This document shows positions 1 to 54,364 of a stretch of DNA of 64,000 nucleotides, one piece after another (position 1 is the stretch's first letter; every line of letters starts with the position of its first letter). The position numbers were made by a program, and so were the translations under genes. A model generated the notes under the pieces. It was not told the origin of the DNA. It saw only the letters and a program-made list of their open reading frames with translations, and ran no database searches. The stretch is from Rebecca billardiae RCC1528 (lineage: Eukaryota > Protista > Haptophyta), in NCBI GenBank assembly GCA_965240325.2, contig OZ251237.1, positions 744,001 through 808,000 on the forward strand. Direction: 5' to 3'.

Positions 1-269
1 TTTGAAACGTGGTTCGGGTCCGCACTGCGGGCTCCACGCTGCGCGCTCCGCCCTGCACCGCGGGCCATAATATAACAGCTAACTCAATTAAAGTCGTAGT
101 ATTATATAACATGCAGTAGTCATCTGCTAGCTACTTACTTAAGTTACTAATAAGCTACTTTGAGCTGGCCGGGGTACGGGGCTGGGCCTGGAGGCTTCAG
201 CCGCCGGTCTGTACGACCAGTAACATCGTTGGAGCAGCGTCGTCAACTCGTCATGATGCATCATCATCA

Positions 270-1670
270 TCATGATGCATCATCAATAACATCAGCATTC
301 TGATGATCAACGTGAACGTCGTGACGAGTATTCATGCCGCCATCAACATGTAGCACCACGGCAAGCGCCCCTGCAGGCGGCACAGCCATGAACAGCGACA
401 GCAGCAGCGGCGGCGGCGGCAGCGCGCACGCCTCGCACGCGCCGGACGCCGCTTGCCCATGCGCGGCGATTGCCGCCGCCGAGACGATGGCGCGCGCGCT
501 GAAGTGCAGCCCCATGGCAGTGGCGCGCAGCCGGCCGTCGAAGCGGCCGAGGCTGAAGTCCAGGCACTGCACGATGGCAACCGAGCGCGCGATGGGCACC
601 GCGAGCATCGCACCCACGTATCCGAGCCACGCAACCGGCTGCGAAGGCCCGTGCGCCGCAGCGACCAGCGCAGCGGCGGCCGCGGCGGCGAGCAGCGGCG
701 CGGCGGCCAGCAAAGCGAGCGCTGCCGAGAGGGCAGGGCGCCGCGGGCTGACTCCAGCAAGGGCACACCCGCGCTTGAGTGCGCGTGCGATCTCCGGGGC
801 ACGGAACGAGCCGACCACGCCCGCGCCAGCGTACACGGCCATGTACCCGCCGTACGTGAACACGCCGCGCCCAAAGTAGCCAAGCACCACGTCCGGCGAG
901 GCCGCTATGAACAGCCACGCGGCGGCGCACGAGCACGCGTCCGCACAGAGGTGAGCCATATACGGCAGGTCGCCTGTGAGGACGCCGAGCGTGCGCAGCA
1001 CACCGGGACGCTCGTCGACGCCATCGAGCGCGTCGTACGCGGGCAGGTCAGTGGCCCCATCGTCCGCACCGCCATGCGCGGACGCCGGCCGCGCGCGCTC
1101 GCCCGCATCCCCTGCGAAGACCGCGGCAAACACCGCTGCGGCCAGCGTGCCCGTGACTGCAAGCAGGGCAAACACCGATCGCCAGCCGCATAGTGCCAGC
1201 GCGAGCGAGCCGATGCTCGGCGCGCCGAGCACGGCGAGCGTGCGCGCCGCGACCACGCGCGAGAGCACGCGCTCGCGGGCGGGCGCGTCGCCTTCGAAAC
1301 GGTCGCCAATCATTGCCTGCGCCGCGACGAGCGACGCGGCGCCACCGACCGCCTGCGCGACGCGGAGCGCCAGCAGCAGGCGCAGCGAGGTGGGTAGCGC
1401 GGCAATCGCACTCGCCGCGACAAAGAGCACAAGCCCGATGGCCAGCGTCCGCACCCGGCCACACGTGTCCGCGCACGCCCCGACGAGCGGGTACGCGAAG
1501 CCAAGCGCGAGGAGAAAGACGGTGATCACAGACTGCGCGTGCGCGACGGGCACTCCGTACTCGAGGGCGATCGCGGGCAGCGAGGGCGCCACAACATCGG
1601 ATGCGAACGCCGCAAGGATTCCGAGCAGCACGAGCGCCGGCTCGAGGCAGCCCGCCAACAGTGCTAGCAT
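270..1670 (-). CDS. MFS transporter, DHA1/Bcr-CflA drug:H+ antiporter-like
   Basis: 466-aa ORF with ~12 hydrophobic segments. Contains DVVAPSLPAIA (Bcr/CflA D.Y.P.LP.I motif), an MFS motif A-like GACADTCGRVRTL, and motif B-like LRVAQAVG. Confidence 0.85.
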   Translation of the reverse strand: MLALLAGCLEPALVLLGILAAFASDVVAPSLPAIALEYGVPVAHAQSVITVFLLALGFAYPLVGACADTCGRVRTLAIGLVLFVAASAIAALPTSLRLLLALRVAQAVGGAASLVAAQAMIGDRFEGDAPARERVLSRVVAARTLAVLGAPSIGSLALALCGWRSVFALLAVTGTLAAAVFAAVFAGDAGERARPASAHGGADDGATDLPAYDALDGVDERPGVLRTLGVLTGDLPYMAHLCADACSCAAAWLFIAASPDVVLGYFGRGVFTYGGYMAVYAGAGVVGSFRAPEIARALKRGCALAGVSPRRPALSAALALLAAAPLLAAAAAAALVAAAHGPSQPVAWLGYVGAMLAVPIARSVAIVQCLDFSLGRFDGRLRATAMGLHFSARAIVSAAAIAAHGQAASGACEACALPPPPLLLSLFMAVPPAGALAVVLHVDGGMNTRHDVHVDHQNADVIDDAS

Positions 1671-1709
1671 CAGAAACAGTGATGGACGACGAACCGCCGC
1701 GCGCCATCT

Positions 1710-2785
1710 GAGGCCACTTCACCGAAATCCAGGTTGGGGAGGATCTCCGCTGCACTGGTGGGGAGGATGTCATCCTCCCCGCTCGCCACGGCTGGGGAGG
1801 ATGTCCGCCGCGCTGTCCGGTCTTTCGCCGCTGACAAAACTTTCGAAAACGAAAGTCGCGCTATGGCGGACCCGGTGTTCCCGCCCGGCGGCGAAAGGGG
1901 CGCGGGGCCGGTGGCTCGCGATCCGAAGGGCAGTAGCACGCGACCTCGCTTGGGCGGTGGCAGCGGCGCTGTGGCACGGCGTGTACCATCCGCGCGGCTG
2001 TGCGCGATCGCGCGGTCCCGTTCGTCGCCACGCCGCGCGCGACCGTTCACGCCACAGTCTTTCCGCACTGGCATGCACCCGTCGCAAGCGCATGACGGCG
2101 GAGAGCTCAGAGAGCCCGTCACGCGCGTGACGACCGTGTGGGATGGGTTGTACAGCTTGTCTTCATGTTCAGGGAGGCACGCGCCGGCCCATGAGGCGGG
2201 CATGAGGATCATGGACGGCTGCTGTACTGTCCACAACTCCATGGCCGTGTGGCAGGCGATGACTCATCTTTCAGCAGTTAGGAATGGTCTGAACGTTGGA
2301 TGGGCTCATCAGAAAGCCTACGAAGGGCAGCCTTCATATCGGCACAACCCATCCCACACGGTCGTCACGCGCGTGACGGGCTCTCTGAGCTCTCCGCCGT
2401 CATGCGCTTGCAACGGGTGCATGCCAGTGCGGAAAGACTGTGGCGTGAACGGTCGCGCGCGGCGTGGCGACGAACGGGACCGCGCGATCGCGCACAGCCG
2501 CGCGGATGGTACACGCCGTGCCACAGCGCCGCTGCCACCGCCCAAGCGAGGTCGCGAGCTACTGCCCTTCGGATCGCGAGCCACCGGCCCCGCGCCCCTT
2601 TCGCCGCCGGGCGGGAACACCGGGTCCGCCATAGCGCGACTTTCGTTTTCGAAAGTTTTGTCAGCGGCGAAAGACCGGACAGCGCGGCGGACATCCTCCC
2701 CAGCCGTGGCGAGCGGGGAGGATGACATCCTCCCCACCAGTGCAGCGGAGATCCTCCCCAACCTGGATTTCGGTGAAGTGGCCTC
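1710..2785. mobile_element. Foldback/MITE-like non-autonomous DNA transposon with 442-bp terminal inverted repeats and 5-bp TSD
   Basis: 1710-2151 is the reverse complement of 2344-2785 (about 2 mismatches by eye), with a 192-bp spacer. Termini are GAGGCC...GGCCTC. The direct repeat CATCT sits at 1705-1709 and 2786-2790. Confidence 0.9.
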
Positions 2786-2901
2786 CATCTCCCACGCGAT
2801 CCCGCCAGTCACAAACGAGCCGTATTAATCACTGTACTTAGTAGTAGTAATGATCTCATGCTTCATGCCCACCCAGCAACCAGCAGGGTGGGAGGGCAGG
2901 G

Positions 2902-4503
2902 AGAAACAACTCCCAGAGGAGGAGCAGCCACCAGCGCAGCGGTGACCAGAGCAGCCACGCCGGCCGCCGCGCCGCGGGTGCAGCCAGCGAGCGCGGCCGC
3001 ACCCAGACGCGCATGGCTTGCCAAGCTGCTGAGCCAATCCAGGCCCGCGCCCAATCCGGGCCTGGCTCGGCTTGACGACCGGAAAACCTCCAGGCAGCCG
3101 GACCCTGGCTGCCAGCCCGCCCTCATGAGGGCTACCGGTGAGTTATACCCGCATAACCGAGCGGTTATACAACCATAACTCACTCGGTAGACCCACATGA
3201 GAGTAGATTGAGGTGGGGGCCGCGTTGATAAACGCGTGAGGTGACTAGGTCACACCCCCGAAGCCGTCCAGGATGCGACGCCGACCAGGAAGGACTCGCC
3301 GATGCATTCGAGCAACTACGCCGACAGAAGCCGATGACCGCCTAGACGCCGAAGAGGAAGTACTCGATGGAGCACGTAGACCGCAGGCGCTGGCAGCCGA
3401 CGCCCCCCCCCAACGCAAGTTTGGGCAGAGCGCGGCGCCGCAGGAGGCAGAGGCCTCGAGGGCCTCCACCCAGAAGGAGGTGTGGAATGCCACACCCCGC
3501 AGGGGTGGTGGCCGGGGGCCCGAAGAGGCCGAGGCCGCCGAAGGGGTAGCGCGAGGACCGAAGGCGGCAGAGGCCCAGAGGGGCTCCCCGCAGGGTTGTA
3601 TGAGTAAGGACGATCCAGACGGCATGAGACAGTGGGCACGAAAACATGCGCGGCGGCGGCGGCGCAGGCGGGAAGCAGGCGCGAGACACGCACGCGTAGC
3701 GTCAGATAAGGTAGCAGGTCGCATCCCACACACAGCAGTGCACGGCAGACTGCAGAGGAGGCGGCAGAGAAGGAGAGAGCAGCACCCACCCGCCAGGCGA
3801 TGAAGGCAAGCGAGACTGCGAAGCGTGAGAAGATTGCAGACGGGGACGCCTGGGAGCGGTTCCCAGGCGCCCCCATCGAAAGCAGAGCATGAGAAGATTG
3901 CAGACGGGGACGCCTCGAAGCGGTTCCGAGGCGCCCCCATTGAAAGCAGAGCATGAGAAGATTGCAGACGGGGACGCCTCGAAGCGGTTCCGAGGCGCCC
4001 CCATCGAAAGCAGAGCATGAGAAGATAGATTGCAGACGGGGACGCCTCGAAGCGGCTCCGAGGCGCCCCCATCGAAAGCAGATAGAGCATGAGAAGATTG
4101 CAGACGGGGACGCCTCGAAGCGGCTCCGAGGCGCCCCCATCGAAAGCAGAGAGCAAGCAGGGCAGGTGCACGAGTGGAGAGAGCGAGGGCTGAGGGCGGC
4201 CTACCGCCGACGCACACGCACCTGGAAGAAACAACTCCCAGAGGAGGAGCAGCCACCAGCGCAGCGGTGACCAGAGCAGCCACGCCGGCCGCCGCGCCGC
4301 GGGTGCAGCCAGCGAGCGCGGCCGCACCCAGACGCGCATGGCTTGCCAAGCTGCTGAGCCAATCCAGGCCCGCGCCCAATCCGGGCCTGGCTCGGCTTGA
4401 CGACCGGAAAACCTCCAGGCAGCCGGACCCTGGCTGCCAGCCCGCCCTCATGAGGGCTACCGGTGAGTTATACCCGCATAACCGAGCGGTTATACAACCA
4501 TAA
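2902..4503. mobile_element. Non-coding element bounded by 277-bp direct repeats (LTR-like or non-autonomous retroelement-like)
   Basis: 2902-3178 and 4227-4503 appear identical (AGAAACAACTCC...TACAACCATAA). No TG..CA ends, no clear TSD and no recognisable RT/integrase ORF. Confidence 0.6.
3827..4151. repeat. Tandem array of five ~64-bp hairpin-containing units
   Basis: Unit GAGAAGATTGCAGACGGGGACGCCTCGAAGCGGTTCCGAGGCGCCCCCATCGAAAGCAGAGCAT starts at 3827, 3891, 3955, 4019 (72 bp, with two 4-nt insertions) and 4091. Confidence 0.95.
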
Positions 4504-4768
4504 TCTGTATGTCGTCATATTTGGAGCCCAGCTAGCATTCGTTATTTTGTATTTAAGGGCCCTTTGTAGAACCTCCGCCCGCCGCTCATTATTATTTTCT
4601 CGATCGAAGCGAACTGTGATCGGGATCGCGGTTGGATCCCTCATCCCCGGTAGGTGTGCAGCCGCCGGGCGCGCGGCGCCGGTGCCGAAGAACCACCGAA
4701 GGCAAGAACCGACTGAATCTGTCGTCATAACCCGCGGTGACCTCCGAGTGGAACGCGTGGCCCCCGGC

Positions 4769-5854
4769 ATGGAGCTGGGTGGCGTATCGGGCCTTCTCTG
4801 CGCCGCCTCTTTCGCATCGCTCAGCACCGCAGTGCTACTGCTCTTCCGCGCGCGCACACGCGAGAGGAATGTGCGTGTGGCCCTTGCAGAAGCCGTGTCA
4901 CGAAACCGCACGCTCTGCCTCGAGGTGTTGCAGCACCGGCGCGCGGTGATGAACGCGTCGCCATCGAGTGTCGACCGGGCACGCAGTTTCAAGCCGCGAG
5001 CGAGCGACATTCTGATCGCCACGTACCCGAAGAGCGGCACGACGTGGGCCTCGCACATCCTGCACTCGCTGCGCTCTGGCGGTGATCTCGACTACCGTGA
5101 GATCACAGACGTTGTGCCATACAATCTGTTTGCTGAAGATCTCGGGCAGAAACTCGACGCAGATCAAGGGTGGGAGCCGCGCCTCTTCAAGACGCACGAC
5201 TCAGCGGACGTGCTCTCGCAGGGCGGGCGGTATGTCGTCGTGTTCCGCGACCCAACCGACGTGCTCCTTTCGATGCACGAGTATGTACTGGCTTATTGCG
5301 GACTGCTGCCAGATGATGTGGACGTTGCTGACTTCGCGCACGCAATGCTGCACGAGAACGTTTACTCTGCAGACCTCTGGCAGTTCATGCTCGGCCACTG
5401 GCTCCGTCGCCACCACAGTGGCTGCCTGCTCCTCTTTTACGAGGACATGGTCGATGACACCCCCTCGCAGGTGCGCCGGCTGGCTGCGTTCATGGGCGTC
5501 GCGGACGAGGACGTGATACAACTCGCTGTCAAGCAGGCAAGCCGCGAGTTCATGACGAGTGATGAGCACGCACACCGCTTCGACGACTCTCCCGTGCGCA
5601 CAGTCTGCATCAGGGCACTGGCTAACCGGCTTGCGTGTTTGCCGGCGCTCGGCGAGTTCAACCCACACGCTGCTGCCAAGGCCAAGCTGGCCTCCGCTGA
5701 GCGTGCTTCGTCGCGCCAGCGTGTGCGTGCGCGCGCAGAGGAGTCGGGCAGTATCGCCAAGTTCGAAGCACGCTGGGCCAAGGTTATACACGCAGCCACC
5801 GGCCTCACAGGCTATGCCGAGATGCGTCGGGCCTTCGCGACGGAGCAGCTGTGA
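4769..5854 (+). CDS. PAPS-dependent sulfotransferase (Sulfotransfer_1-like) with N-terminal hydrophobic anchor
   Basis: 5'PSB motif DILIATYPKSGTTW, FKTH, 3'PB motif VFRDPTDVLLS, and LLLFYEDM. First in-frame ATG is at 4769. Confidence 0.9.
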   Translation: MELGGVSGLLCAASFASLSTAVLLLFRARTRERNVRVALAEAVSRNRTLCLEVLQHRRAVMNASPSSVDRARSFKPRASDILIATYPKSGTTWASHILHSLRSGGDLDYREITDVVPYNLFAEDLGQKLDADQGWEPRLFKTHDSADVLSQGGRYVVVFRDPTDVLLSMHEYVLAYCGLLPDDVDVADFAHAMLHENVYSADLWQFMLGHWLRRHHSGCLLLFYEDMVDDTPSQVRRLAAFMGVADEDVIQLAVKQASREFMTSDEHAHRFDDSPVRTVCIRALANRLACLPALGEFNPHAAAKAKLASAERASSRQRVRARAEESGSIAKFEARWAKVIHAATGLTGYAEMRRAFATEQL

Positions 5855-16142: not shown

Positions 16143-16750
16143 CGCGGCGCAGTCGTCGTATAGTTAAAACCGCGTGATATTATAATTATTATTTTGTCAC
16201 TGATGCAATACTGAATACTGCGCTCTTGAGACTGAGTGCTGCGCGCTACTAATGCATACCGGGTTGCCTATACCGTAACCGTTCTGTCCGTCGTTATTCA
16301 TGTTGATGCGATTATTACTCATCAGAATATGATATAGAATACTCGTCTGCGCACTCTGCGCTGACGAGCATTATTGATGATGACGACCGCTATACGGCTC
16401 CGCCTCCAGCTTACCGCGGCACCTGCGCGCCATAGATAGCACTATATTAGCAGCACGACGACTTCAGCGCAGCTAGCGCTCTGCGCTAGCAGCAGACAGT
16501 AGCATCAGTGAGTCGCGGCGCAGTCCGTCGAAACACTCGAAACCGTGATGTTATAACTTACAGCGCGCTATACTGCGCGATTACTGCGCTGACGACGACC
16601 GCTAGCTGCTAGTGCCGCTACGGCTCCGCCTCCAGCTCCCCGCGGCACCTGCGCGCCATAGGCCCGGGCATAGCACTATTAGTTAGCAGCACGACGACTT
16701 CAGCGCAGCTAGCGCTCTGCGCTAGCAGCAGACAGTAGCAGTGAGTCGTC
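16143..16750. repeat. Degenerate local duplication in intergenic DNA
   Basis: About 16382-16515 matches about 16594-16748 (TACGGCTCCGCCTCCAGC...GCGCTAGCAGCAGACAGTAGCA). 16143-16185 also resembles 16515-16560. Confidence 0.8.
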
Positions 16751-17080
16751 GTCGTCATCATGATCATGTCGAATATCGATTGACGATTCATATCGTCATC
16801 GACGCTTGGTTGGCGGTATAACATATCATATATCAGATGATGTATGACGGCGACAGCAGATCATGATCATCGTCGTCGTCGTCGTCAGTCGTCATATATA
16901 TCATCGCGTCATCGTGCGCATCGATCATCATCGTCGTCAGTCGTCATCAGATGACGATCGCTATCATCCGCGCGGGCGCTGCCGCGCCGCGCTGCCGCGG
17001 AATATGCGCTTGCTGTGTATATATATATATGCGCGGGGTAGTCGTCATCATCAGTCATCGCACATTCGCACTGCGACCTC

Positions 17081-20000
17081 TCATCGGGATCGCTTGGCCT
17101 TTTTGTTTTTCATCACTGCCGCGGTGCGCCACCTGTTTGCGGTGCCGTGCTGCGCCATGCGCCCCCAGCGCTCAAGCGCGTGCGACAGCGGCATGTCCAC
17201 CTGCTTGAGCGCGTAGCCCTCCGTGTCAAACCAGGTCATGTAGTCGGGCGCGGCGCCGCACGCCACCAGCACGCGCGTGACGAGCGGCCACGTGAAGCGC
17301 TGCGCGGCCGGGCTTTGCCGCATCGCCGTCTGGAGCCACCGGCCGTACAGCAGGAGCCGAGCGACCTCGCCGAACGCCGACGGCTGGGGAATCACGAGCT
17401 GAGTCGCGCGCGAGAGCAGCCACAGCTCGACGAGCCTCAGCCGCTGGCACGGCCGCGAGGCCGGCGCGAGCGCGCACGCGCTCGCCTGCACCGGCGCGAT
17501 GGCCTCCCGCAGCGCGGTGGACGGGGCTGGCTGCGTGGCGCGCCGCGCCTCGGCCAGGTGCTCGCAGCCCGCCGCTCCGGGGTCGCAGGTGAAGGCAAAG
17601 GCCGTGCCCGGGCTATGCGCCACCCGCGCGGCAATCGCGCGCAGCGCTGGGCTCACGGGCGGGCACCGCTCGGCCGTCGGCCGCCGCACGCGCACCCTGG
17701 GCGCGCTCGAGTCGCCGGCACTCCGGTTGGTGCCCACGTGCACGCCGATCGCGCCGCCGACGCGGTGCGCCTGCGCCGCGTGCTCGATCAGGGGCCCAAG
17801 GTCGTCCTGCCGCGGGCGCAGGCCGGCGAGCGCGCTCGCGAACGCCTGCACGGAGTACTTGCGCAGCGCGGAGATGAGCACCGTGCGCGTGCGCACATGC
17901 AGGTTGGTGCCGCTCGAGTGTGCCGCCGAGATCACGAGGGGGCGGTGGTCGTCGCCGCGCCAGCCGCGCCGTGGGTACTCAGCCCATCGCCGGCCGGCCG
18001 TGGCTGCGAGCTCGGCCGGCGGCATTCGGCCGTGGCGGGCGCCGTCCGCGCCCGGCGCGGCGGCGTCTGGCGCGAGAGGGTCGAAGCTGAGCACGAGCGA
18101 GCGCTCTGAGCGCTCGAAGAGATCATCATACTCTGCCTCGCACTCGCTGTCCGCCTGCCACACAACCACAGGCACCAGGTTGAGCTCCCTCGCGAGCGCG
18201 AGCGCGCTGCCGAGCGCGCGCACGCGGCTCGCGACATCACCGAGCACGACGACGACGAGCAGAGGCTCCGCGCTCGTGGCGCGCGCCGCCCAGCGGCGGA
18301 ACTCGCGCCGCTCGCGCGCGCGGCTCCAGCACGGGCCGAGCGGCGAGTAGTCGCCGCTCGTGTCGTCCGGCACCGGCAGGGTGACAGGCGTGCGCCGCGT
18401 TTGCCACGCAGAGCCTCCCAGGGGGTCCTCGGTCGAGAGCGTGCCCGGGCCTGATTCGGGCGGTGCGGCCTCCGGGCCTCCGCCGCCCGCGCTCTCCGAC
18501 CCGGCGTCGGGGCTTGTGCTGGGCCGAGGCGCGACGGAGTACTCGTGCACGCTCGCACCGCGGAGGCCCCACGCGCACGACGACAACCAGTCGCGGCGCA
18601 CGCCCGCGCTGCGCAATACACCCAGCTCCGCGACCAAGGGCGGCGGCGCCGCGCTCGCGCCGCCCGTCCGCGCGGAGGTGAGATTGGACGCGGGCCCGCC
18701 GCCGCCCGGCATGATAGAGCCGCTGCTGCCCGGCCGTGCGCGCTGACGTTGCGGGACGGGCGTCGAGTACGCGCCGCCGCGGGCTCCGACGCCGGCCGCG
18801 GACTCGAGTCCCGCAATGCGCGCCGTGTGTGCGCCGGCCGCTACGGGCAGCGGCTGATCCGCCGCCTCCGCAGCGCCACCCCGCCACCAGTGCAGCTGCA
18901 GCCGCTCGTCTGCGGGCCCGGCGTGCCCTCTGCTGGCAGCGACATCAAGCACAGCGCACGCCGAGGCGGAGGCCGAGCGCTGCGCGTGGGAGCGCCGCCG
19001 ATGCTCGACACTCGACTGCGCGGAGTGCGCCCTGCACGGCAGCCAGCGGAGGCTCATGTTCGCCGCCTGCACCCGGAACGCCAGCAGCCGATCGACCTCG
19101 GTCCGGACGGCGGCCCCCTCCGCGAGGCCGTGAAGCTGCACCCACCGCGCCTTCGGAAGCAGCACGCCGGCGACCGCGCAGCCGGCGCAGGCCGCGGACG
19201 CCGCGTCCGAGGCGGCGGCGGCGGCGGCCGGGTCCGAACGCCCGGGGTCGCTTCCGTCGGCGTGCGCGGCGCACGAGCGCGCGCGACCGTCGCCGAGGCA
19301 CAGGCACGCGTCGACTCGAGCAGCGGCGGGCGCGCCGCGCGCCGAGCTCGAAGCAGCGCGGGGAGCGGCGCGCGCGGACGCGCCGCCGCGAGCGGACGCG
19401 TCGCAACTGCCGATGGCGAAGGCGACATCAGGTACCGACTGCCGCGCCGAGCTGGGCGCGATCTCGCGCAGCGCGGAGAAGAAGGCGGGCGTGAGCCGCG
19501 CGCGCGCGCTCACCAGCGCGACCAGGTCGGCGGCGGCAAAACGCATGGCGACGTTAATGGCCTCGGCCGCGCGCCCCAGTGCCGGCTCCTCGGGCGCCCT
19601 GTCAGACAACGCTGCGCGCTTGCGCGCCGCCCTCGCCGCCGTCGCCGCGTGCGCGCTCGTCCACACCGACGGCGCGCCCGACGGCCCCGTGTGCGCGTGC
19701 GCACGGGCGGGCAACGCCAGCCAGCGCATGCTCACGAGATGGCCGGCTGCGTCCGCCTTGGCGCGCGCGCGCGCGCTCTCGCCCCGAGTGCGCCCCGCGG
19801 CGCCCGCGGCCGCGCTCGTCGCCGGCACGCAGTCGACGGCGCAGGTGAAGATCACCTCCACCCGGATCCCGTGCAGCCGGGCCGCCGAGGCGACGCCCTT
19901 GAGGAAGTGCTCGGCTGCGCTGCGCACGGCGAGCGCGTGCAGCGTCGGGCCGACGCGCGGGAAGCTCCGCCGCAGCGCCGAGCGCGGCCTGCCGGCCAGC

Positions 20001-22900
20001 ACGAGCGTGCTGCTGCTCCCTGCGCCCGGCGCTAGCAGCTCGTCTGCCGGCACGATGATCGAGATTGCAATCTCCTTCGCGCGCATCAGCCGCGCGAGCA
20101 CGGCGCTGATGCCGCCGACGCGCGCGCTGGGCGCGACGTGCGCGTCGGCCGCCGCGTCCGTCTCGGCGTGCGCCCGGTGCTCGCTGCCCGCCTCCTCCCG
20201 CCGCGCGCCGCCGTTGCCACTCCGCACAAGCAGCGCGTGAGCCGACGAGCCCGGCGACTCGGCCGAGGTGTGTACGCGCCAATTGTGCGGCAGGTACCAC
20301 AGGCCGAGGGTGTGCAGGTGCAGCGCCTTCGCGCCGCCCATCTTCGGCGTGAGGCAGTGCGCGACGAGCGCGCGCCCGTTCACCAGCCCTTCGCGCGTGC
20401 ACTGCCGCACGATCACCACCGGCGGCAGAATCGCGACCTGCAGCGAGGGCGAGGTTGCCCCCGCCGCCGCGGCCCCGGCACCGGCCGCGCTGCTCGAGCC
20501 GACGCGCACGCGCGCAGCAGCGGCCCCGCCGACTGCGCCCAGGGTGAGGGCGTGGGCGTCGGCCAGGGCGCTGCTCGGGAGCCCCGCGCTGCGAAGGAAC
20601 GCGGCCAGCCTCCCATCGGTGCGGTTGAGCCCATCGCCGTGGGCGCTCGCCGTCACGAGCACGACCGTCGCCGGCGGCGAGCGCGGCGCGCTCGGCAGCA
20701 CGTCCGGACGCGCCGCAACCGATCGGACGTGTGCGGCGAGCTCGGTGTTGAACGCGACCTGGTCGTCGCCGATCTCCTCGGAGAGGGCCTGCACGCCCGA
20801 GGCGAAGGCGAGCATGGGCGGCGTCGAGCGCAGCAGCACGAAGCCCATCACCGCCGTGCTGCCGCCGAGCGCGCGCCGCGCCGCTTCCGGGAAAGTTCCG
20901 GCCGACGCGACGGCGTCAGCTGGCCGCGAGCTGAGCCCGGCGGTGGCCCCGACCGCGAGGCGGCTGACGCGCGGGAGCACGTCGTCGAGCCAGACGGCGT
21001 CGGAGTCGCACATCAGCACGTCGAGGCCCGCGCGCAGCAGGAGCAGCGCGAGAGCACCGCGCTCGATCCACACCTGATGCGCAGCGGCGCGCGCGCGGGC
21101 GGCGCGCGCGAGCGTGTCAAGAGTGCGTGTCGCGAGCGCGCGCGGGCGAGCCATGGTCGAGATCGTGGTCGAGATCGGTCCCAGACGATTGCGCCTCGCT
21201 CGGCAGGAGGCGGGCGGCGCACGCTCGCTCCGCCCTCGCCCCGCGCACGCGCGCGCCGTGCGCACACCCCGTCGAAGCGGATGTCCCCCTCGTCCGGCCG
21301 CATCGCTCTACTTGCCGTGTACCTCGGGATCAGAGGGAACACCGCCGCGCCCAGCGTGCGCAGCTCGTCGTGCGAGTGCCAGTCGAGCGCGCCCACGACC
21401 GGCATCATCTCGACGCCTGCGTGCACACGCACGCTGCGCGAGGGGAGCGCGGCGCGCCGCGCGACGCACAATGTGATGAGCCGCTCACATCAGCGCGGGC
21501 AGGCAGGCATCGGGCGCGCGCCGCGCACACCTGAGGAGGAAGTTGAGCGTCACATCGACATACGGCTCGCTTGTCGTCGTAAAGACCACCGTGCGACCGT
21601 TCGGGCTCGCGCGCGCGCCCGCGCGCGCGAGCTCGAGCGCGAGCGCGTCCCGATCCGCGCACGGCGCGCCCGACTGATCGGCAGGCGGCGCGTGGCCCAG
21701 CCGGTTGGCAATGTGCCCAACGACGGCCCACACGCGGCAGGCGAGCGCGGGCGGCCAGGCGTGGCGGTGGTGCGGGCCGCCAGTGCCGTGCTCCGCCGTG
21801 GGCGGGCTGCCACGCGCGTCCGCCCGGTGCAGCCTCGGGTCAGCCGGCGCGCTGCACGCCAGCCGTGCGCGCCTCTGCAGCGCTGCTGCGTGCTCCGGTT
21901 CGCCCAGGCGGCGCGAGCTCGCGGCTGCAGGGCCGGCGGGCGGCGCGAGCCAGCGGAGCGCCCTGGTGAGCTCAGTCACGCAGCCCGCCGGCGTGACGAG
22001 CCGCTCGAAGCTCGCGGTGAACGTCGCGTTCGCCCCGTCTGGCTCCGCGGCGGCGCGCTTGGCGAAGCGGCGGTGCGAAGCCCACGTCGCCAGGTAAGCC
22101 TGCGCCAGGCTCAGGGCCGACTCTGCTAGGTGAGCCGAGAGCGCGCGACTGAGCTCGGTGCCGCCGAGCGAGTCGACGTGGCCGCCGCTGTCGCCCGCGT
22201 AGTACAGCCGCTGCGTCTCCGCGTAGATCGCGTCGAGCGGGTGTCGGTCCAGGAAGAGCGCGCGCGTCGGCCGCCACCGGTGGCATCGGCTGAAGAAATA
22301 TTTGAGCGCAGATTTGGGCAGGTGGCGCGCGGCCGGGTTGCGCGCCTCGGCGCCGTGCCACGGGAGGTGCCCGCGGCGCACCGCCGGCGCTCCGTGCTGC
22401 GCGTCCGCCCGCTGCTGCCAGAAGCGCACCGCCTCGACCGGCGTGTGCATCGCGTGCGCCTTCACCACGAGCGTGCTCGTGTCGCACCGCCGCTCGCCCA
22501 CAAAGACGGCGCGCAGCGAAGTGTCGTCATAGGCAGAGCCCGTGGCGATGCCGGTGGCGCGCTCGAGCAGCTGGCGGAAGTACGAGTTGCCGCTGCCCGG
22601 GAAGGAGTACAGGACGGGCGGGGCCCACGCGCACGCGCCATGCGGGAGGAACGCCGCGTGGCCGTCGGACGCAGGCTGCAGCGAGCATCCCTCCGCCGCC
22701 GCCGTCAAGGCCCGCCGCCGCCCGGCCGCCCGCTCGGGCCCGGGCCAGCCCTGGCCGAGGGGCGCGGCACCGGGCGTGGCGTTCGCCGCGAGCTCTAGCG
22801 CGTGGATCGATCGCTCGTTGCGCGCGTCGACGGCGGCCCCCGCCCTCAGGCAGCCGAGCAGCACCAGTGCGATCGGCCCAGCTCGCCTCAACGGGCGCAT
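17081..22900 (-). CDS. Multidomain secretory-pathway glycan-modifying protein: signal peptide - sulfotransferase - nucleotide-diphospho-sugar transferase (GT77-like) - GT-A-like - fucosyltransferase-like; exons 22900-21531, 21433-21268, 21073-17081 (~1842 aa)
   Basis: Two GT-AG introns (21434-21530, 21074-21267) join three ORFs in frame. The joined frame rebuilds a Nucleotid_trans-like motif series (FTTTSEPYVDVTLNFLLS...VGALD...VWIER...GLDVLMCDSDAVWL...DDQVAFN). The N-terminus carries YSFPGSGNSYFRQLLERATG, VKAH and RHPLDAI (WSCD-type sulfotransferase). The C-terminus carries VVVWQADSECEAEYDDLF, IGVHV and ELWLLS..SAFG (FucT/NodZ-like). Confidence 0.75.
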
Positions 22901-23214
22901 GATGATCGCGATGGCGGCGCAAGCTTTTGCCCGCCAAGGCTTTGCGCCTGATTGGTGGACAAGAGCAGTCAACGCTCACCACATGCGATTTCAGCCCGAC
23001 GAACTCGTCAGCACAACTCCGCCACCGAAGGCGCCAACAGGTTGCATGCGTGCGGCGGGCACTCACTACTGTGATGGCGCCCCGGCTGTGGCGTCTGGCC
23101 ATGAGGGCGCGGCGTCGGCGGCGACCGGCGAGGTCTTGGGCGAGCTCTTCGCGGGCCCACTCGTCCCGATGGGGCGTGGGGCCGCGCCTGGCCCTGCTCA
23201 CAAGGTGTACTGTA

Positions 23215-46268: not shown

Positions 46269-48087
46269 TCAACGCCGCCGCTTTTGCGAAGGCTTGCCGT
46301 CTGCGCTGCCGGGCCCTGAGGCGGCGTGAGGCGCAGGGCGCGCGCGCGCGGCAGATGGGGACATGCCGGGCGGGATCGGTGCCAGCGAGAGAGGGGGCTG
46401 CCAGGCATCGACGCGCGCATGCACACCGGCGCGCGCGGCGCGCGTGCGCGCCGGATTCACAGCACGCGCGCGGCGGGCGCGCGCGAGCGAGGACGCACCC
46501 GCCGTGCCAGCCAGCGGCTCGTCCTCACGCTTCCGCTTGCGATCCGCCGGCGCGGGCCGGCCGTTCTGCGCCTCGAAGCGCCACGTGCGCTCGTCGAGCA
46601 GAACCTCCTCGGGCGCGGCCGACGAGGGCGAGGGCGCGCGCGCCGCGTCGGCCGCGCCGTGCGCTCGCGCGCGCGCCGCGGGCGCGGCGGCGCCAGGCGT
46701 GCGCGGCCTGCTGTCGAAGAGGATGGAGTGCCGCGCGTGCCGCGGCGCCGAGCGCATCACCACGCCCGCCCGCCACGTGAGCTGGTCGTCCTCGAGAACC
46801 TCCAGGCGGCTGCGAGTGCGCGGCGCGCGGGCGCGCGCACAATGGTCGGCGGCGCGGGCGCGGACGAGCGCGCGCGCCTGCTCGGCGCACGGCGCACGCG
46901 CGAGCGTACGGCGTGTGCGGCGCGCGCGCGCGCGCACCTGCCGACAAGGTCAGCGCGCGCCGCCGCCGCCTGCTTCGGGTCGACGGCGCGCGGCTTGGAG
47001 GGCGGCGCCGTGCCACCGCTCGGCGCTACGCTCGCGCTCGCGGCCGGGGGCGGCGCAGGCCGCTTGGCGGATGGGCGTGAGGGCTCGGCGCTCGCAGCGG
47101 CGGCCGGCGAGGCTCGTGCGCGCTTGGCGCCGGCACTCGCACTGCCCGGCGAAGCGGGCGCGGGGCGCGCGGGGCGCGCCGCGGCCTTGTGGCCTGCCGC
47201 TGTCCCCGCCCCGGACTGCCCACGACCGCCCGCGCCACCCGCCGAGCCGCCCGCCCGCGCCGCGCCGGAGGCGGCGGCGGCTGACGGCTTGGACTTGGCC
47301 GCACCCGCGCCGCGGCCGGTGGCGCCGCCGGCTGGCGCGGCCTTGCCGCTGCGCGAGGGCGAAGGCGTGGGCTTGGCTGCGGCGGCGGCGGCGGGCGGCG
47401 TCGGCTTAATGTGCGCTGCTGGCGACGAGGCCGCAGGCTTGGCGCCGCCGCTGCCGCCGCGCGCGCGGCTTTTCTCACGCTCGGCCTTCAGGTATGCACG
47501 TCGCCCTTCCTCCAGCACGGACTTTGAGATTCGAATCACGGAGCGCGGCTGGTGACGCGCCGGAGGCTTCGGAGGCTGCTTCGAGCCGCCGGGGCCTGCC
47601 GCGCGCGGTGCGGCGGGCGGCGGCCGCGCTGCCGTCGCCGCCCCCTCCGCGTCCGCCGGCCTTCGCCACGCCGCCACGCGCCACGTGGAGCCGCCGTGCC
47701 ACACGCGCGCGATGCGCAGCCGGCTCGCGTCCACCTCGTGACGCGCGTCGGCATAGTGCGGCGAGGCTACCGCAAAGGTGAGCCGCCCTGCGCCGCCGCT
47801 GTGCGCGGGTGCGCTCGGTGCCGTCTTCGCGACCAGCTCGACGAGCCACCAGCCCTCCTCGTGCCAAAGCTCAAGCGCCGAGCCCACGTGCGCGCGTGAG
47901 ACCATGGTTGCGTCCGAGGGCGGAGGCACCGGGCGAAGCCGGCTGAGAGGCACACGCTCCCGGTAGCGGCCAGAGGGCTCCGGCTGCGGCCGACCGTCCC
48001 GCGGCCGGTCGGGCGACTCCGCGGGCCCCGCGGGAAGCTGCTGCGCCCTAGAGGCGGGCTCGGAGCGGCCTGACGCGCCGCCGACAT

Positions 48088-48120
<33 letters not shown>

Positions 48121-51100
48121 GCGCGCCCTCTGCCGCGGGCGTGGCGGCGGCGGCGGCGGCGGCAGCGGGCGCGCCCTCTGCCGCGGGCGTGGCGGCGGCG
48201 GCGGCGGCGGCAGCGGGCGCGCCCTCTGCCGCGGGCGTGGCGGCGGCGGCGGCGGCGGCAGCGGGCGCGCCCTCTGCCGCGGGCGTGGCGGCGGCGGCGG
48301 CGGCGGCAGCGGGCGCGCCGCCCTCAGCCGCGGGCACGGTGCGGGCGCCGTCGGCAGTTGGCGCGCCCTCATCTGCAGCGCCAGCCGCGCGGTGCTCCGC
48401 CGGTGCGCCGGCCGCCACGGCAGTGCTAGGCGCGCGCTCCGCCGCCGGCGCCGGCGCCGCTGCCTCCTCCGCCTCCTCCGCCTCCTCCTCCGCCTCGTCG
48501 TCCGCGGTGAACGTGTGGTATTCCACCTCCGCGCTGCCCGCGTCCGCGCCCGCCGCGCCTCCGCCCCTGAACAGCCGCAGCACCTGCGCGGGATACCAGG
48601 AGCCAATCAGCCCGTCGTCCACCGACTCGACCTCGACCTGCGACCCCTCGCAGATCGCGCCGCGCTGCTGCGAGCCCTCCGCCGCGCCCGCCTCCGCGCC
48701 CTCGCCCGCGCTCAGCGGCTCCCACGGCGACCAGAGCGGTCGGCAGCGCTCGTCGAGCTCAGTCCGCCACCACGAGCCGTCTCGCGACCGTCGAATGGAG
48801 CCGACGAGCAGTCGGTGTGCGCCGAGCTCCGGAGGGTCGCCCGCGAAGGCGTCGAGCTCGCTGTCCAGGTGCAGAGCCGCCTCGGCCGCCGCCTCGGCCG
48901 CGTCAGCGTCCGCGTCGTCGTCCTCGTCGTCCGACTCGGCGCTGCGCCGCGTGTCGGGCGTCCCGGTCGGCCTAGCCCGCGCGCCGCGGCCCGCCGGGGA
49001 CGACCTGCGCCGCTCGCGCTCAGCCCGCTCGCCCGCGCTGCGCTCGACCTTGCGCACGAGCCGCTCGACGGTGTTGCCCACGATGAGCCGGATGAAGCGC
49101 GCCGCGCGCTCGTCCTTCTCGCGCTGCCGCGCCTCGCGCTCGGCGGCGCGCGCGGCGAGCGCGCTCTCGCGCTGCGCGCGCCGCTCGGCCGCGAGAGATT
49201 CGCGCATCGCGCTCGCGCGCTGCTTCTCAAGCTGCCGCTCGGCCTTGGCGGCGGCGATCTGGTCCAGCTTTTGCTGGCGCGCGGCCGCCTTGGCCGCGGC
49301 GCGCTCCGCCTTGGCCGCCTCCTCCGCCTCCTTCTGCGCGCGCCGCTGCGCCTCCTTCGCCTCGCGCTCCGCGTCGCGCGCCAAGCGGAAAGCTTCTTCG
49401 GCCGCCTCGCGAGCGCGCCGCGCCGCCTCCTTCTCTGCCGCGCGCTCCGCGCGCCGCCGCTCCTCCTCCTCCTCGCGAGCGCGCCGCGCCGCCTCCTTCT
49501 CTGCCGCGCGCTCCGCGCGCCGACGCTCCTCCTCCTCCTCGCGCGCGCGCCGCGCCGCCTCCTTCTCTGCCGCGCGCACCGCCTTCTGCCGCTCCTCCTC
49601 ATCGCGGCGCGCGGCGCGCGCCTTGAGCTTCACGCTGCGGCGCGCGTCGGCCTCAAGCCGCCGGAGCACCGCTTCGAGGGTCGCCCGGACCTGCGCGGAG
49701 TCCTGCCGCTCGCGCTCGGCGGAGGCGAGGCGATTCAGCCCGCGCGCGTGCGACGCGGCGTGGAGGTGCCGCACGAGGGGCTGCGAGAGCGCCTGCACGA
49801 GCGCGCGCATCAGCAGCACCGCGCGCGCGGAGCTCGACGCGCGCGCGCACGCCCGCAACCAGAGCGCCGAGTTCGACATGGACATTGCGTCGAGATGCCG
49901 AACCGAGGCGCGCGCGAGCGCGCGCGCGTCCACGCGCGCGTCCGCGCGCGCGCGCTCGCGCAGCCCCGCGCGCAGCGTGCACCACTCGCACGCCCACTGC
50001 CCTTCGGGCACGGCGCTCAGCTTGGGCCGGCAGCAGAAGGTGTGCATCGCGCCGTCACACCCGTCACACATGAGCAGCTCGGCGTCGACGTCGTCCGCGC
50101 CGCAGCGGGAGCACACGGCGGCGAGCAGCTCGGGCTCGGCGCCGTCCGGCAGGCCCGCCGCGTCGCCGGTGGAGTCCTCGTCCTCCTCCTCGTCGGCGTC
50201 GTCGTCCTCCTCCGAGCCCTCCTCCTCGCTACTGCCTGCCTCCGCATCGTCGTCACCGTCGCCGTCGCCATCGTCGTCGTCGTCGTCCGTGCCCTGCTGC
50301 TGCCGCTGTTGCTGCTGCTGGCGGGAGCGTCGCGAGGAGCGCTGCGCCGCGGCAGACTTGGCGGCGAGGCGAGAGCTGCGCCGCCCGCTCGTGGCAGCGG
50401 GCGTCCCCTCCTCCTCTACCTCGTCCTCCGCCTCCTCCGCCGCCTCCTCCGCCGCCTCATCCTCCGCCTCCGCCTCCGCCTCCGTCGCCTCACCTTCCGC
50501 AGCGCCGCGCGCCGCCGCCGTGGCGTCCGCGCGTGCTGCCGCCGCGTCATCGGCGAGGCTGCCGCCGCCCAGGCTGCCGCCGTCGTCCGCGCCAGCCCCG
50601 TCTGCCCCCTGCCCAGCCGCGGCGGGCAGCCCGAGACCGGGCGGCACGTCGGAGGGGCGTCGGAGCGCGTCGCTGTGGACCTCGACCCACGAGTCCCACA
50701 GTTTCGACAGGCCGACGAATCGGACAAGCGCGCGGCGCCGCGCGGCCGTCTCGACGGGCTCGGCCGGCGCATCCGACGGCGGCGAGCACGCGCCGGGCTC
50801 GTCCGCCCCGTGCGCGGGCTCGAGCGCAAGCACTTCCGCCTCGCACCAGCAGCCGGCGGCGTCGCGGCACAGCAGCCTCTCTCCCAGGGCGAGGCCAGCG
50901 AGCTGCGGTGGCGCCGGCCGCAGCGGCGCATCGGTCGAGCAGTCGGCAGCCGCGGGGGCAGGGCCGCCGGTGCTCGCAGCCGGCGCGCCGACGGTGCCGT
51001 CGGCGCGGCCGCCGCTCAGCGCGGCGAGCGGGCCAGCGTACGCAGCAGCTGATCGCAGCGCGGCCGGCAGCGAGCCCCAGTCCGGGACTGTCGGCTCGTC

Positions 51101-51323
51101 CGGTTCGGCGCGCGCGGCTGCGGCGCTCGGCCGCGCGCGCGGCTCGCGCGCCGCCTTCGCCGTCGGCGGGCGGAGCGCCTTCGCCACCGTCGGGCCGTCG
51201 CGCATGCGGCACCGGCCGCGGTGTCCGTTCTCGCTCACGCAGTGGGCGTGGCGCGCGCACTGCACGAGCCGCGCTCTGAACCCCTCGCCGTGGGCCGCGC
51301 CGAGCGAGTCGGCGCCATCGCCA

Positions 51324-51361
<38 letters not shown>

Positions 51362-54300
51362 CGACACATCCTCCTCCTCCTCCTCCGACGATGGCTCACT
51401 CTTCGCGCCCGCCGACGGGGCCGACCGCGGCGCAGCTCGCTCGCGCGCCGGCCGGGGACGCGGGGTGGCGGACGCACGCGGAGCGGACGACGACGTGTCC
51501 GCTGGCCCGCCGCGCAGGCGGCAGCGCCCGCGGTGCCCTTTGACGTTGGTGCAGCGCGGGTCGCGCCAGCACTGCGCATCTGCCGACCGCTCGGCTGGCA
51601 CGTCCGCGAACCCTGCCGGCGGGCTGGGCGATCCGGGTATGTCTGGCCGCCCGTCAGCCCCGCCCGCATCGGCCGTGGCATGAGCGTCGGCGGCGGCGGC
51701 GCCAGCTGGCGCGCCGTCCTCCGCCGCGTCCGCGCCTGCGGCGTCGAGCTGCATGTCAGCTCCGATGTCCGCGGCGGGCGCGGCGCTCGCGGGTGCGCGG
51801 GCGGCGGCCACGTCTGTCAAGCCGCTCTCGTCTCCCGCTGGCGCCGTGCCGGGCTCTGCCGCTGGGGGCGCGGCTGCCAAGTGCGGCTCAAGAGGCGCGG
51901 CCGCCGCGGCCGGATCGGCCGCGGCCGCGGCGGCTGCGGTCGGTGTCGGCGGCACGGCTGCGCTCGGCGCAGCAGCCGCGGCTGCGGGCGGCACGTGGGC
52001 CGTAGCCGCGCCCGGCGCGGCGGCCACGCGCGCAGACGACAGCGCGGGAAGCGCGTCGGCGCACGGCGCAGCAGTCGCGACACCAGCCGCCCCGGGGGCA
52101 GCAGCCGCCTCACTGGGCGCCGAGGCAGGCGGTGATGCGTGCGCAGCGGCTGCGCCCGGCGCACCGGCCGCAGGCGCCGCGTGCACGCCCTCCGCCGCAG
52201 GGCCCCCCGCCATGGCCGCGACCGGCGTGGCATCTGCGCCCGCGGCCTCGGCGGCGGCCGGCGCGCCGCCCGCGTCGGCCCCGTCGGGCGCGGCGGCGCG
52301 CCGTGCCGCCGGCTGAGCCGCCGGCTGCGCGCGGCAGAACGGCGGAGAGCGCCAACTGTCGACGAAACTCGCCGGGTGAAGCCGGCGCTCCAGTTGCGCG
52401 ACGAGCGCCGCGAGCTCGGCTCCAGATTCGGCGGCGCGCACGTGCACCTGCCACGCCTCGCGCGCCGCGCCCGCCCAGTCCGGCGGCAGCAGCGCGCCGT
52501 CGAGCAGCCCCTCGAGCTGCAGCAGCAGCAGCCGCGACGCCTCGAACGGCTCGACCCGCGCGTCGGGCGTGGCGCGCGCGCAGCCCTCGACGTGCCGCCA
52601 ATATTCGCAGATGTTGAGGCGAGAGCGGCGGCAGCAGATCGGGCAGAGCGCGCCCGTCTCACCCAGCTGCATCTCCTTCGGCATGGCGCACACCTCCGCC
52701 AGCACCACCTCCGGCGGCGGCGGCGCGGGCGGCGCGGGGGCAACGGTCGTCGCGGCACGCTGCGCGAGCGCGGCCGCGGCCGGCGCCGCCGCAGCCGGCG
52801 CCGACGCGGCCGGCGCTCCGGCTCGCCTCGCCGACGCTGCCGGCGCCGCGGCCGGAGAGTTGGCCTCGTTGACGGTGCCCTCGTCGTCGTCCTCGTCGTC
52901 GTCGCCCGCCGCGCTCTCGCCCTCCGAGTCCCCGGAGCCCGCGCCGAGGCGCGAGCCCTCGCCGCCCTTCGCCGCGCTGTTGCCGCGGCTGCCCGCACGC
53001 GCCAACGCCAAGTCGCCGTCGTCGCCGTCGCCGCCGCTCGCGCCGCCGCCGCCGCCGCGCAATGCGGCGCTGAGCTGCGCGGCGTTGCCGTCGGTAGCCG
53101 CGCGCGCGCGCTCGGTGGCGAAGTTCTCGATCGCCACGCCCAGCCCGCGCTCGTGCGCGCACACGCTGCCCCGCAGCGCCGCGACCAGCTGCGCCAGATC
53201 GGCGGCCGCGCAGAACGATCTCGCCGCGCCAGATTCGGAGTGCGCCCACACCGCGCCGGCGATGCAGACGTACTGCCAGCCGTGACGGTCTCGGCCAAAG
53301 GGCTCGACGCGCAGCGTCTCGACGGGCGGCCGGCCCTGCACGCGGCCGAGCGACGCCGCCGCCGCCCAGTCCCACGGCAGCGCCGCGATCCGGGAGCCTC
53401 GCGCCCGGACCTCCTCCGCGACGAGCCGAGAGCGGAGCGCGCGCGCGCACAGCGCACTCAGGATACGCAGCCGGTCGGCGGGCTCGATGCGCGCGTACTC
53501 TGTGGCGTGCAGCGCGCGCGCCGCGACGGCCGAGCCGGGCGGCAGCTCGCCCTCGCGCGCGCCCAGCGTCACCATGTACTCGCACGCGACCGCCGGCCAG
53601 CTCAGCGCGCTCAGGTGGCGCAGCTTGGCGGCCGGGCTCGGCAGGTCCGCCTCGCCGGCGCCGCGATCCGACTCGGAGTCGGAGTCGGCGCTCGCCGCGC
53701 CGGCGGGGGCGCAGCTGACGCAGTAGCGCAGCAGCTCGGCGTGCAGCTGGTGCCACGCCATCGGTGGCGCGCGCGACGCGAGCCCGGACGCCGCGAGCTC
53801 GATCGACACGGCCGGCAGCCGCATCAGCGGCCCGAACGCGTTTGCGAACGCGACCGCTTCGAGAAGCTCCACATGCAGCTCGGCAGGGACGGCGGCTGCG
53901 GCGCTCGGGCCGGCCGGCACGAGGCGCGGCTCGTCGGCGAGGGCGGGCGCCTTGCCGCGCGCCGCCTTGCCGCGCGCCGCCATGCCGAGCGCGCCCGCCA
54001 GGTCGCAGCGCACGGCGTCAAGCTCCTCCGCCGTGTATGGAGCATCCTGGCCGGCAAACGGACCGCTCGGCGCCGTGCCGAGCGTGGGGTAGCCGTGCGT
54101 GACGCGGGCGGGCGTCGTGGCGCGCTTCGCGCTGCCGCCACCCTCGCCGCCGCCGCTCCCGCCGCCGCCGCCGCCACGGCCCGCTCGGCCGCCGCGCCCG
54201 CGCCCGCGCCCGCGCGCGCGCCCGCGGCCGGTGCTTGCGGCCGTCTTTGGGCTTGCAAGCTTCTCGGTGTGTACGAGCTGCTTGAGCGACTTCCTGATCT

Positions 54301-54364
54301 TGGCGACCGTGGCACGTGCGGCCGCGCGCGAGGGCCGTGCCGTGGTGGCCTCGCCCTCGGCCAT
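46269..54364 (-). CDS. Large chromatin reader (DDT/WHIM/WSD-like, Tudor/chromo-barrel, PHD finger, coiled-coil, Agenet/Tudor), BAZ/RSF1-like; intron 46810-46937, 3' end uncertain
   Basis: DDT-like ELLEAVAFANAFG; WHIM-like RLRILSALC; WSD-like EPFGRDRHG..Y; chromo-barrel LVRFVG.SKLWDSWV; PHD CSRC...LLMCDGCD..MHTFCC.PKL..VPEG.W.C..C; Agenet GSQVEV...GSWY and ELWHEEGWW. Confidence 0.8.
48105..48325. repeat. 48-bp coding minisatellite (PAAEGAPAAAAAAAAT) x~4.5
   Basis: Repeated GGCGCGCCCTCTGCCGCGGGCGTGGCGGCGGCG units. Confidence 0.9.
49405..49575. repeat. 66-bp coding repeat (AAEKEAARRAREEEEERRRAER) x~2.5
   Basis: Repeated CGCGCCGCCTCCTTCTCTGCCGCGCGC units. Confidence 0.85.

Follow-up and report, generated by a model that had tools for sequence, protein, structure and literature searches.

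The 64,000-nucleotide window analysed here, from the haptophyte Rebecca billardiae RCC1528 (contig OZ251237.1, positions 744,001 to 808,000), carries on its reverse strand three neighbouring open reading frames (ORFs), ORF3 (21485-22972), ORF2 (21013-21471) and ORF1 (17081-21265), and the question they raise is whether they are separate genes or pieces of a single one, and what its product would do. ORF3 and ORF1 lie in the same reading frame, relative to which that of ORF2 is shifted. The window has a GC content of about 70%, and its genes are eukaryotic, long and nearly intron-free, in agreement with the GC content and intron paucity of the Diacronema lutheri genome (73% GC, 45% single-exon genes; PMC8379373). 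As long ORFs in many frames are expected in such GC-rich DNA, independent support was sought for the splice model. From the evidence given below, we consider it probable that one nuclear gene encodes a secretory protein of 1842 residues, in which four conserved modules stand in a fixed order and which likely has a role in glycan assembly. The predicted order is a sulfotransferase-like module, a retaining GT-A glycosyltransferase (GT) of family GT77 with a DSD motif, a conserved domain with GT2-like motif spacing that lacks a DxD, and a GT-B domain of the alpha2/alpha6/O-fucosyltransferase superfamily.

The three-exon model with an 1842-residue product, which the preliminary description had put forward, is borne out by several kinds of evidence, and on these sequence data the three ORFs are one spliced nuclear gene, a structure that we regard as established short of RNA. 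Joining 22900-21531, 21433-21268 and 21073-17081 gives 5529 nucleotides coding for 1842 amino acids, and the sole stop codon is the terminal one. Exon 1 (21531..22900, (-), with the ATG at 22900) encodes the leader, the sulfotransferase-like domain and the first strand of the GT77 domain. Intron 1 (21434..21530, (-), 97 nt) begins with GTGTGCGC and ends with CGCAG, its GT being at 21530-21529 and its AG at 21435-21434. It is followed by exon 2 (21268..21433, (-), 166 nt), which is read in the ORF2 frame and encodes the GT77 residues VRVHAG...DIRFDG, and by intron 2 (21074..21267, (-), 194 nt), which also begins with GTGTGCGC and ends with CATCAG (GT at 21267-21266, AG at 21075-21074). Exon 3 (17081..21073, (-), stop codon at 17081-17083) holds the rest of the GT77 domain, the middle domain and the fucosyltransferase-fold domain. 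At the first junction, exon 1 ends at codon position 2 and exon 2 supplies position 3 (AG+C, giving Ser), and at the second, exon 2 ends on a codon boundary and the join is codon to codon. The GC content at third codon positions (GC3) follows the same path: between about 22900 and about 21550 the ORF3 frame shows a value of about 0.9, and the signal then lies in the ORF2 frame at 21500-21276, is gone at 21275-21075 and returns in the ORF1 frame down to 17084.

The donors of both introns are the identical 9-mer GGTGTGCGC (G|GTGTGCGC), which occurs nine times in the window where 3.1 copies are expected, a count that was reached in one of 100 shuffles. The further copies are at 36828, 41510, 48814, 52686, 58014, 63528 and 63834, and the copy at 58014 coincides with the exact end of the Pfam match of a UDP-glucose pyrophosphorylase (UDPGP; residue 539 of the ORF from 56398). 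Because of its enrichment and of this copy at the break of the UDPGP match, the 9-mer is very likely the local 5' splice-site consensus, and its other copies are probably 5' splice sites of other genes in the genome.

Comparison with homologues supports both junctions. The nearest named relatives belong to the pavlovophyte haptophyte D. lutheri, namely KAG8460368.1 (P0003; KFE25_011859, 1652 aa), encoded by a single 4959-nt exon in assembly GCA_019448385.1, and KAG8459142.1 (KFE25_002549, 1496 aa), which has the same architecture; the window protein is 36-40% identical to these two. A 4.7-kb JGI contig (L003) contains P0004, which clusters with the MMETSP transcript protein P0024 (1437 aa), as an uninterrupted ORF, and P0006 is one ORF on a genomic Logan contig of 10.7 kb. 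In an exhaustive HMMER search, the exon 1 part (ORF3 residues 97-484) matched the N-termini of P0003, P0004 and P0006 with 34-40% identity (E 1e-53 to 5e-55), and each of the three runs on as a single protein beyond its ORF3-like N-terminus. When P0006 was compared with the window by tblastn, the high-scoring segment pairs (HSPs) were 22675-21521 (frame -1), 21399-21238 (frame -2) and 21073-20639 (frame -1), the third beginning exactly at the first base of exon 3. In BLASTP, the spliced protein gave a single HSP crossing both junctions with P0006 (residues 76-657, 40% identity, E 1e-97) and likewise with P0025 (residues 90-777). A multiple alignment has no gaps at either join (...TLNFLLS|VRVHAG... 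and ...DIRFDG|VWIERG...), and this holds for KAG8460368.1, KAG8459142.1, the MMETSP transcript and the Logan contigs, all of them intronless or transcript-derived. One additional in-frame intron, at 18959-18726, was considered as the only candidate in exon 3 with lost GC3 periodicity, and was rejected as it would delete the conserved ACAV...WWRGG. Several Ala/Gly/Arg-rich insertions distinguish the window copy from its D. lutheri and MMETSP homologues, and such window-specific insertions could hide in-frame introns.

The four-module order is common to at least six protein clusters. KAG8460368.1, KAG8459142.1 and P0024 have the same four modules in the same order as the window protein, share its invariant cysteines and motifs and are about 35-40% identical to it. 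The two introns in the GT77 region set the window gene apart from these homologues, which are intronless or known from a transcript only. Word-indexed homologue searches with ORF1, an N-terminal profile and a middle-module profile returned the query only, one match or none, the candidates being flooded by Ala/Arg-rich words, and a search of NCBIfam returned no match. In the databases, members of the family are named 'hypothetical protein', automatically 'Fucosyltransferase', or 'Nucleotide-diphospho-sugar transferase domain-containing protein'. The dinoflagellate Amphidinium carterae is given as the source of a 429-aa family fragment (P0007, EukProt EP00971), which comprises the end of the middle domain and a fucosyltransferase-like domain whose motifs are canonical. 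Contamination or gene transfer could explain this record, or the family may be more widely distributed.

Among the modules, GT77 (PF03407; 20240..21595, aa ~436-790, (-)) is the most firmly placed. Exon 3 alone matches PF03407 (Nucleotid_trans) at 32.2 bits, above the cut-off of 22 (E 1.3e-7), over profile positions 47-157, and P0004 and P0006 match it at 34.9 and 48.8 bits, continuously from position 4-6 to 158-160. Since the homologues match from position 4 onwards, the N-terminal third of the domain is encoded by the end of exon 1 together with exon 2, and the domain, split by both introns, thus crosses both junctions. Its DxD is the DSD of LMCDSDAVW (D535 and D537 in aa 535-537; 21007-20999), with DSD or DVD aligned in P0006, P0025 and P0004 and EPD in P0003. 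A GT77 module with a DSD that spans both junctions had been proposed, and these matches confirm it. Known members of GT77 include the plant RGXT xylosyltransferases, the XEG113/RRA arabinosyltransferases and AgtA of Dictyostelium. The window domain shares with them a significant PF03407 match and the DxD and is presumably a lumenal retaining GT-A enzyme, but known GT77 enzymes are type II proteins with a single catalytic domain (AgtA: GT77 + WD40), whereas here GT77 is embedded among three large modules. Judged by its motifs, GT77 is the sole module of this paralogue with all canonical catalytic residues in place, and it looks clearly competent.

The protein begins, as had been proposed, with a hydrophobic leader resembling a signal peptide (22823..22900, aa 1-26, (-)), with a Kyte-Doolittle value of about 1.5 at residues 6-26. 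The homologues likewise begin with a hydrophobic stretch, and about 12 cysteines are invariant among them. The leader and the invariant cysteines would fit a lumenal or secreted protein.

The N-terminal module (21611..22636, aa ~89-430, (-)) had been described as a sulfotransferase. Its likeness to sulfotransferases stands, by sub-threshold PF13469 matches in relatives and by motifs collinear with those of a canonical enzyme, but no profile match exceeds a cut-off. PF13469 (Sulfotransfer_3) is the sole Pfam family matched, in five of the eight family members (best E 3.9e-4) and with at most about 20 bits against a gathering cut-off of 27, so that all of these matches fall below it; in P0020, which is 46% identical to the window module, the match begins with the FPGSGNT loop and covers PF13469 positions 7-211 of 216. 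The window module itself was without a match in the Pfam search and in PDB sequence and profile searches. Its motifs on the (-) strand are PGSGNS (22600-22583), KAH, DRHPLDAIYA (within 22252-22217) and FERL...LRWL. At a distance of about 11 kb from this gene, the window also encodes a canonical Sulfotransfer_1 protein (4463-5851, (+); PF00685, E 6.5e-27). The motifs YPKSGTTW, KTH, FRDPTDVLLS and FYEDM...LAAFMG of this enzyme are collinear with FPGSGNSY, KAH, DRHPLDAIYA and FERL...LRWLA of the module, and hhalign sets the family stretch corresponding to DRHPLDAIYA on FRDPTDVLLS with a probability of only 2%, which carries no statistical weight. Sulfotransferases are characterised by a 3'-phosphoadenosine 5'-phosphosulfate (PAPS)-binding loop (PSB) with a conserved Lys/Arg and by a Ser in the 3'-phosphate-binding (PB) motif (PMC11625862). 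Every family member has Gly (FPGSGNS) at the Lys/Arg position of the PSB. The window protein keeps the Arg of the PB motif (DRHPLDAIYA) and has Ala where P0003, P0006 and P0020 have the Ser. Compared with Sulfotransfer_3 (PF13469, e.g. NodH) and Sulfotransfer_1, the module shares the order of a PSB-like loop, KxH, RxPxD and (F/Y)E.L...L but differs in the PSB Gly of the whole family, in the PB Ala of the window copy and in scoring below the gathering threshold. We tentatively call it sulfotransferase-like, with non-canonical loops and a putative activity. A scan of metagenomes gave only distant relatives of this domain, in another context. One eukaryotic contig (L006, 75% GC, 223-2928 (+); also L005) has a 902-aa ORF with a sulfotransferase-like domain of the same variant type (FPGSGNTW / VRHPMAAFWS) and no GT77 or fucosyltransferase-like part, and a cyclin gene adjoins it.

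The middle module (18830..20107, aa ~835-1260, (-)) contains the motifs AINVAMRFAAADL...SARA, GVLLPKARW...DRLL and ACAV...WWRGG and is conserved in six homologues, with invariant N, R, G, W, D-R, C-A and W-R positions. The spacing of its motifs resembles that of GT2 enzymes (strand IAISIIVPA, strand VEVIFT, A-x-N-x-G-x-R-x-A, a strand at the place of the DxD, G-h-L-x-P...G-x-P-E...DR). The acidic DxD/DD residues are absent from all six homologues, in which SARA, SLNT, GLNS, SFGA or ALNA stands at the aligned position. The module had been called GT-A/GT2-like without a DxD; its conservation and the missing DxD hold, but its identity as GT-A/GT2 does not follow from the Pfam, PDB profile, hhalign or AlphaFold results. 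The Pfam and PDB profile searches gave no match, and hhalign against the GT2 domain of P0017 gave a probability of 2.4% over 30 columns. An origin as a degenerate duplicate of the GT77, fucosyltransferase-like or sulfotransferase-like module was also considered and rejected, the hhalign probabilities being below 1%.

The C-terminal module (17240..18304, aa ~1436-1790, (-); GDVASR from 18241, VHVGT from 17743) had been likened to fucosyltransferases (FucT) and NodZ, and this likeness is upheld by structure comparison and by profiles. AlphaFold with an alignment of seven sequences gave a predicted local distance difference test score (pLDDT) of 55-83 in this domain, and the model from the single sequence of the module, with a pLDDT of 37, was unusable. 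The best 50 Foldseek matches in the PDB were all FUT8, AtFUT1, NodZ or POFUT1/2 (E 3.4e-7 to 1.4e-3, TM score (target) 0.35-0.55), and in a viral library giant-virus and phage glycosyl-/fucosyltransferases were matched. By sequence, the module and its six closest relatives had no Pfam match even at E up to 10 and no PDB sequence match. A hidden Markov model (HMM) of the family reached a second protein group (P0008, P0009, P0011, P0012 and P0015-P0019), which includes proteins of the red alga Compsopogon caeruleus, with 43-93 bits over about 300 residues (HMM positions 66-361). P0008, P0009, P0011 and P0017, all four that were scanned, have weak NodZ, XG_FTase or O-FucT matches, mostly below the gathering score; among them only XG_FTase in P0008 exceeds it, and in P0009 and P0017 the NodZ match coincides with the part aligned to the window module. 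The profile link from the window module to NodZ/O-FucT-like proteins is transitive, running via these four proteins, and the assignment of a fucosyltransferase fold, made on a predicted structure, is sound. In this FucT-like subfamily (GLGNRxRALGSA), the domain is fused to a GT2/GT7C domain in P0017 and occurs as two tandem copies in P0008, P0009 and P0012; the subfamily seems prone to domain fusions.

The motifs of this module had been noted as degenerate, and GDVASRVRA (aa 1457-1465) and VHVGT (aa 1623-1627) are indeed present in the protein where relatives carry GLGNR and HVR. In the alpha2/alpha6/O-FucT superfamily, the Gly-rich loop and the Arg of motif I (HxR) hold GDP-fucose, the Arg its phosphate. 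At the Gly-rich loop (G-L/F-G-N-R/Q), the window copy has GDVASR and the relatives GGLGNR/GLGNR, and at motif I it has GVHVGTNR against GVHVRM or GVHIR, with an Arg three residues later that may indicate a shifted register. The C-terminal (S/T)xxS(S/T)FS is partly kept, as PQPSAFGE against SQPSSFSD or GSxWSSFSE. Over the whole series, GLGNRxRALGSA, GVHVR, FYVAxD and C..AL.D..LS....S..SSFSE of the relatives correspond to GDVASRVRALGSA, GVHVGTNR, FAFTCD and CQRLRLVELWLLSRATQLVIPQPSAFGE in the window. KAG8460368.1, P0004 and P0024 keep the GGLGNRLR and GVHVRM motifs that the window copy lacks, whereas P0006 and KAG8459142.1 share the GD-x-x-x-R variant, so that it is a trait of a subfamily and not an error of sequencing. 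Compared with GT23, GT37, GT65 and GT68 (FUT8, NodZ, AtFUT1, POFUT1/2), the window module has the same fold by Foldseek, and its relatives share with these enzymes a collinear Gly-rich loop, HVR, hydrophobic-xD and C-terminal SxxSxFS; identity is only 9-16% with no direct Pfam match, and in the window copy neither the consensus of the Gly-rich loop nor the aligned Arg of motif I is present.

Two other explanations of the locus itself have to be weighed. The locus might be a pseudogene, copied from an intronless multi-domain gene and with decay mutations as its frame breaks, as would suit the intronless homologues of D. lutheri and of the Logan contig with P0006. The only public contig identical to the locus (Logan ERR14847148, matching 16711-23167) also keeps both interruptions; it has no poly(A), ends in GAT/GAC-rich repeats and may derive from DNA or RNA. 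This contig, as the sole public match, and the fact that the three-exon model of this locus has been built from DNA and sequence comparison, are the points that weigh against the spliced gene. However, both interruptions have exact GT...AG ends and the same window-enriched donor 9-mer, their excision restores a gapless alignment with zero residues missing or extra, the 5.5 kb contain no other stops or frameshifts, and GC3 periodicity is intact throughout the exons, so that we regard decay as very improbable. Even less credible are two or three separate genes, with a stand-alone sulfotransferase and a stand-alone GT arranged head to tail. A prokaryote-style gene caller did give products of 471 and 1357 aa, but the GT77 domain is spread over all three ORFs, ORF1 lacks an N-terminus that would be plausible in a secreted GT, and the homologues are continuous single proteins, one of which clusters with the MMETSP transcript entry. 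ORF-style gene calling cuts the gene in two and in this way hides its architecture.

For the single spliced gene, the alternatives concern which modules are active. In the reading that we prefer, the protein would assemble or decorate a sulfated glycan of pentose/fucose type in the Golgi lumen, with several steps on one polypeptide: GT77 would transfer a sugar from a UDP donor, and further steps would be done or guided by the modules next to it. The sulfotransferase-like and FucT-like modules may bind the acceptor or product, act as scaffolds or have an altered chemistry, since the GLGN loop and motif-I Arg of FucT, the Lys/Arg of the PAPS loop and the 3'-phosphate Ser are lost. An "assembly line" function is plausible from the domain content, and several points count against it: the window's sulfotransferase-like and FucT-like modules have no direct Pfam family match, all evidence for the sulfotransferase is sequence-based and below curated thresholds, the AlphaFold model of the middle module is of low confidence (pLDDT below 50 throughout), and, with non-canonical motifs in two or three of the modules, any case for catalysis in several steps is weaker. 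It is possible, although we think it the less likely case, that only GT77 is an enzyme and that the sulfotransferase-like, middle and FucT-like modules are catalytically dead relics with carbohydrate-binding or scaffolding roles, in which case the protein would be a transferase of one activity with large accessory domains instead of an assembly line. This would account for GDVASR and HVG in place of the GLGNR and HVR of relatives, for a PGSGNS loop lacking the Lys/Arg that defines the PAPS loop (PMC11625862) and for Ala in place of the PB Ser, as well as for the missing acidic DxD and DD of the middle module in all six homologues and for the three modules having no direct Pfam match. On the other hand, these three modules keep high GC3 periodicity, their order and many residues including cysteines at about 35-40% identity, the PGSGN(S/T)W loop is invariant in the wider family including the unrelated 902-aa ORF, which suggests a functional variant rather than decay, and the window copy retains KAH, the PB Arg and the C-terminal PSAF of FucT. 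At the other extreme, all four modules could be active, with a metal-independent transferase fold of a new kind in the middle domain, so that the protein would be a haptophyte-type single-polypeptide machine building and sulfating a fucose/pentose glycan, which we consider doubtful and clearly less probable than an activity confined to GT77.

Proteins that carry several domains for building or modifying glycans on one polypeptide are known, among them PgtA of Dictyostelium (GT2 + FucT), LARGE1 (GT8 + GT49), EXT1/2, NDST (deacetylase + sulfotransferase) and A064R of chloroviruses, and the window protein resembles them in this respect. To the best of our knowledge, none of these joins a sulfotransferase-like domain to GT77 and a FucT-fold domain. 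P0017 of Compsopogon is a fusion of GT2 with a FucT-like domain of the same subfamily as the window module. In the literature searched, no description of a sulfotransferase-like + GT77 + FucT-fold fusion in algae was found. The architecture had been put forward as one not known as described; this holds for published descriptions, but the same order already occurs in hypothetical proteins of D. lutheri and in the MMETSP transcript. It is a new domain combination of known kinds, in a family that is already in databases and uncharacterised.

The other gene types in the window are WD40, MFS, UDP-glucose pyrophosphorylase, ankyrin, Band 7 and PHD. The UDP-glucose pyrophosphorylase gene (56398-58338, (+); PF01704, E 3e-116) serves the supply of nucleotide sugars and apparently contains an intron that begins at 58015. 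At 46757-54766 (-), an ORF of 2669 aa with 78-80% GC encodes a PHD finger and an Agenet domain and is probably a large chromatin reader, and the long ORFs antisense to it are likely GC artefacts. The intergenic DNA (16711-17060 and around 46-270) is full of short repeats of GAT/GAC/ATG type (gatgacgacgacgatgatg...), and the Logan contigs of run ERR14847148 stop in such tracts and are therefore gene-sized.

The synthesis of sulfated, fucose- and pentose-containing glycans, which play a part in cell coverings, particle aggregation and carbon export, is little known in marine microalgae. A family that links sulfotransferase-like, GT77 and FucT-fold domains is a concrete candidate for such a pathway in Pavlovales-type haptophytes, and it offers a natural comparison between KAG8460368.1 and P0004, which have canonical FucT motifs, and this gene and KAG8459142.1, which lack them. 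If all four modules were active, this would make the protein the first natural case of a carbohydrate sulfotransferase fused to glycosyltransferases and would give a direct handle on the sulfated, fucose-containing exopolymers of microalgae.

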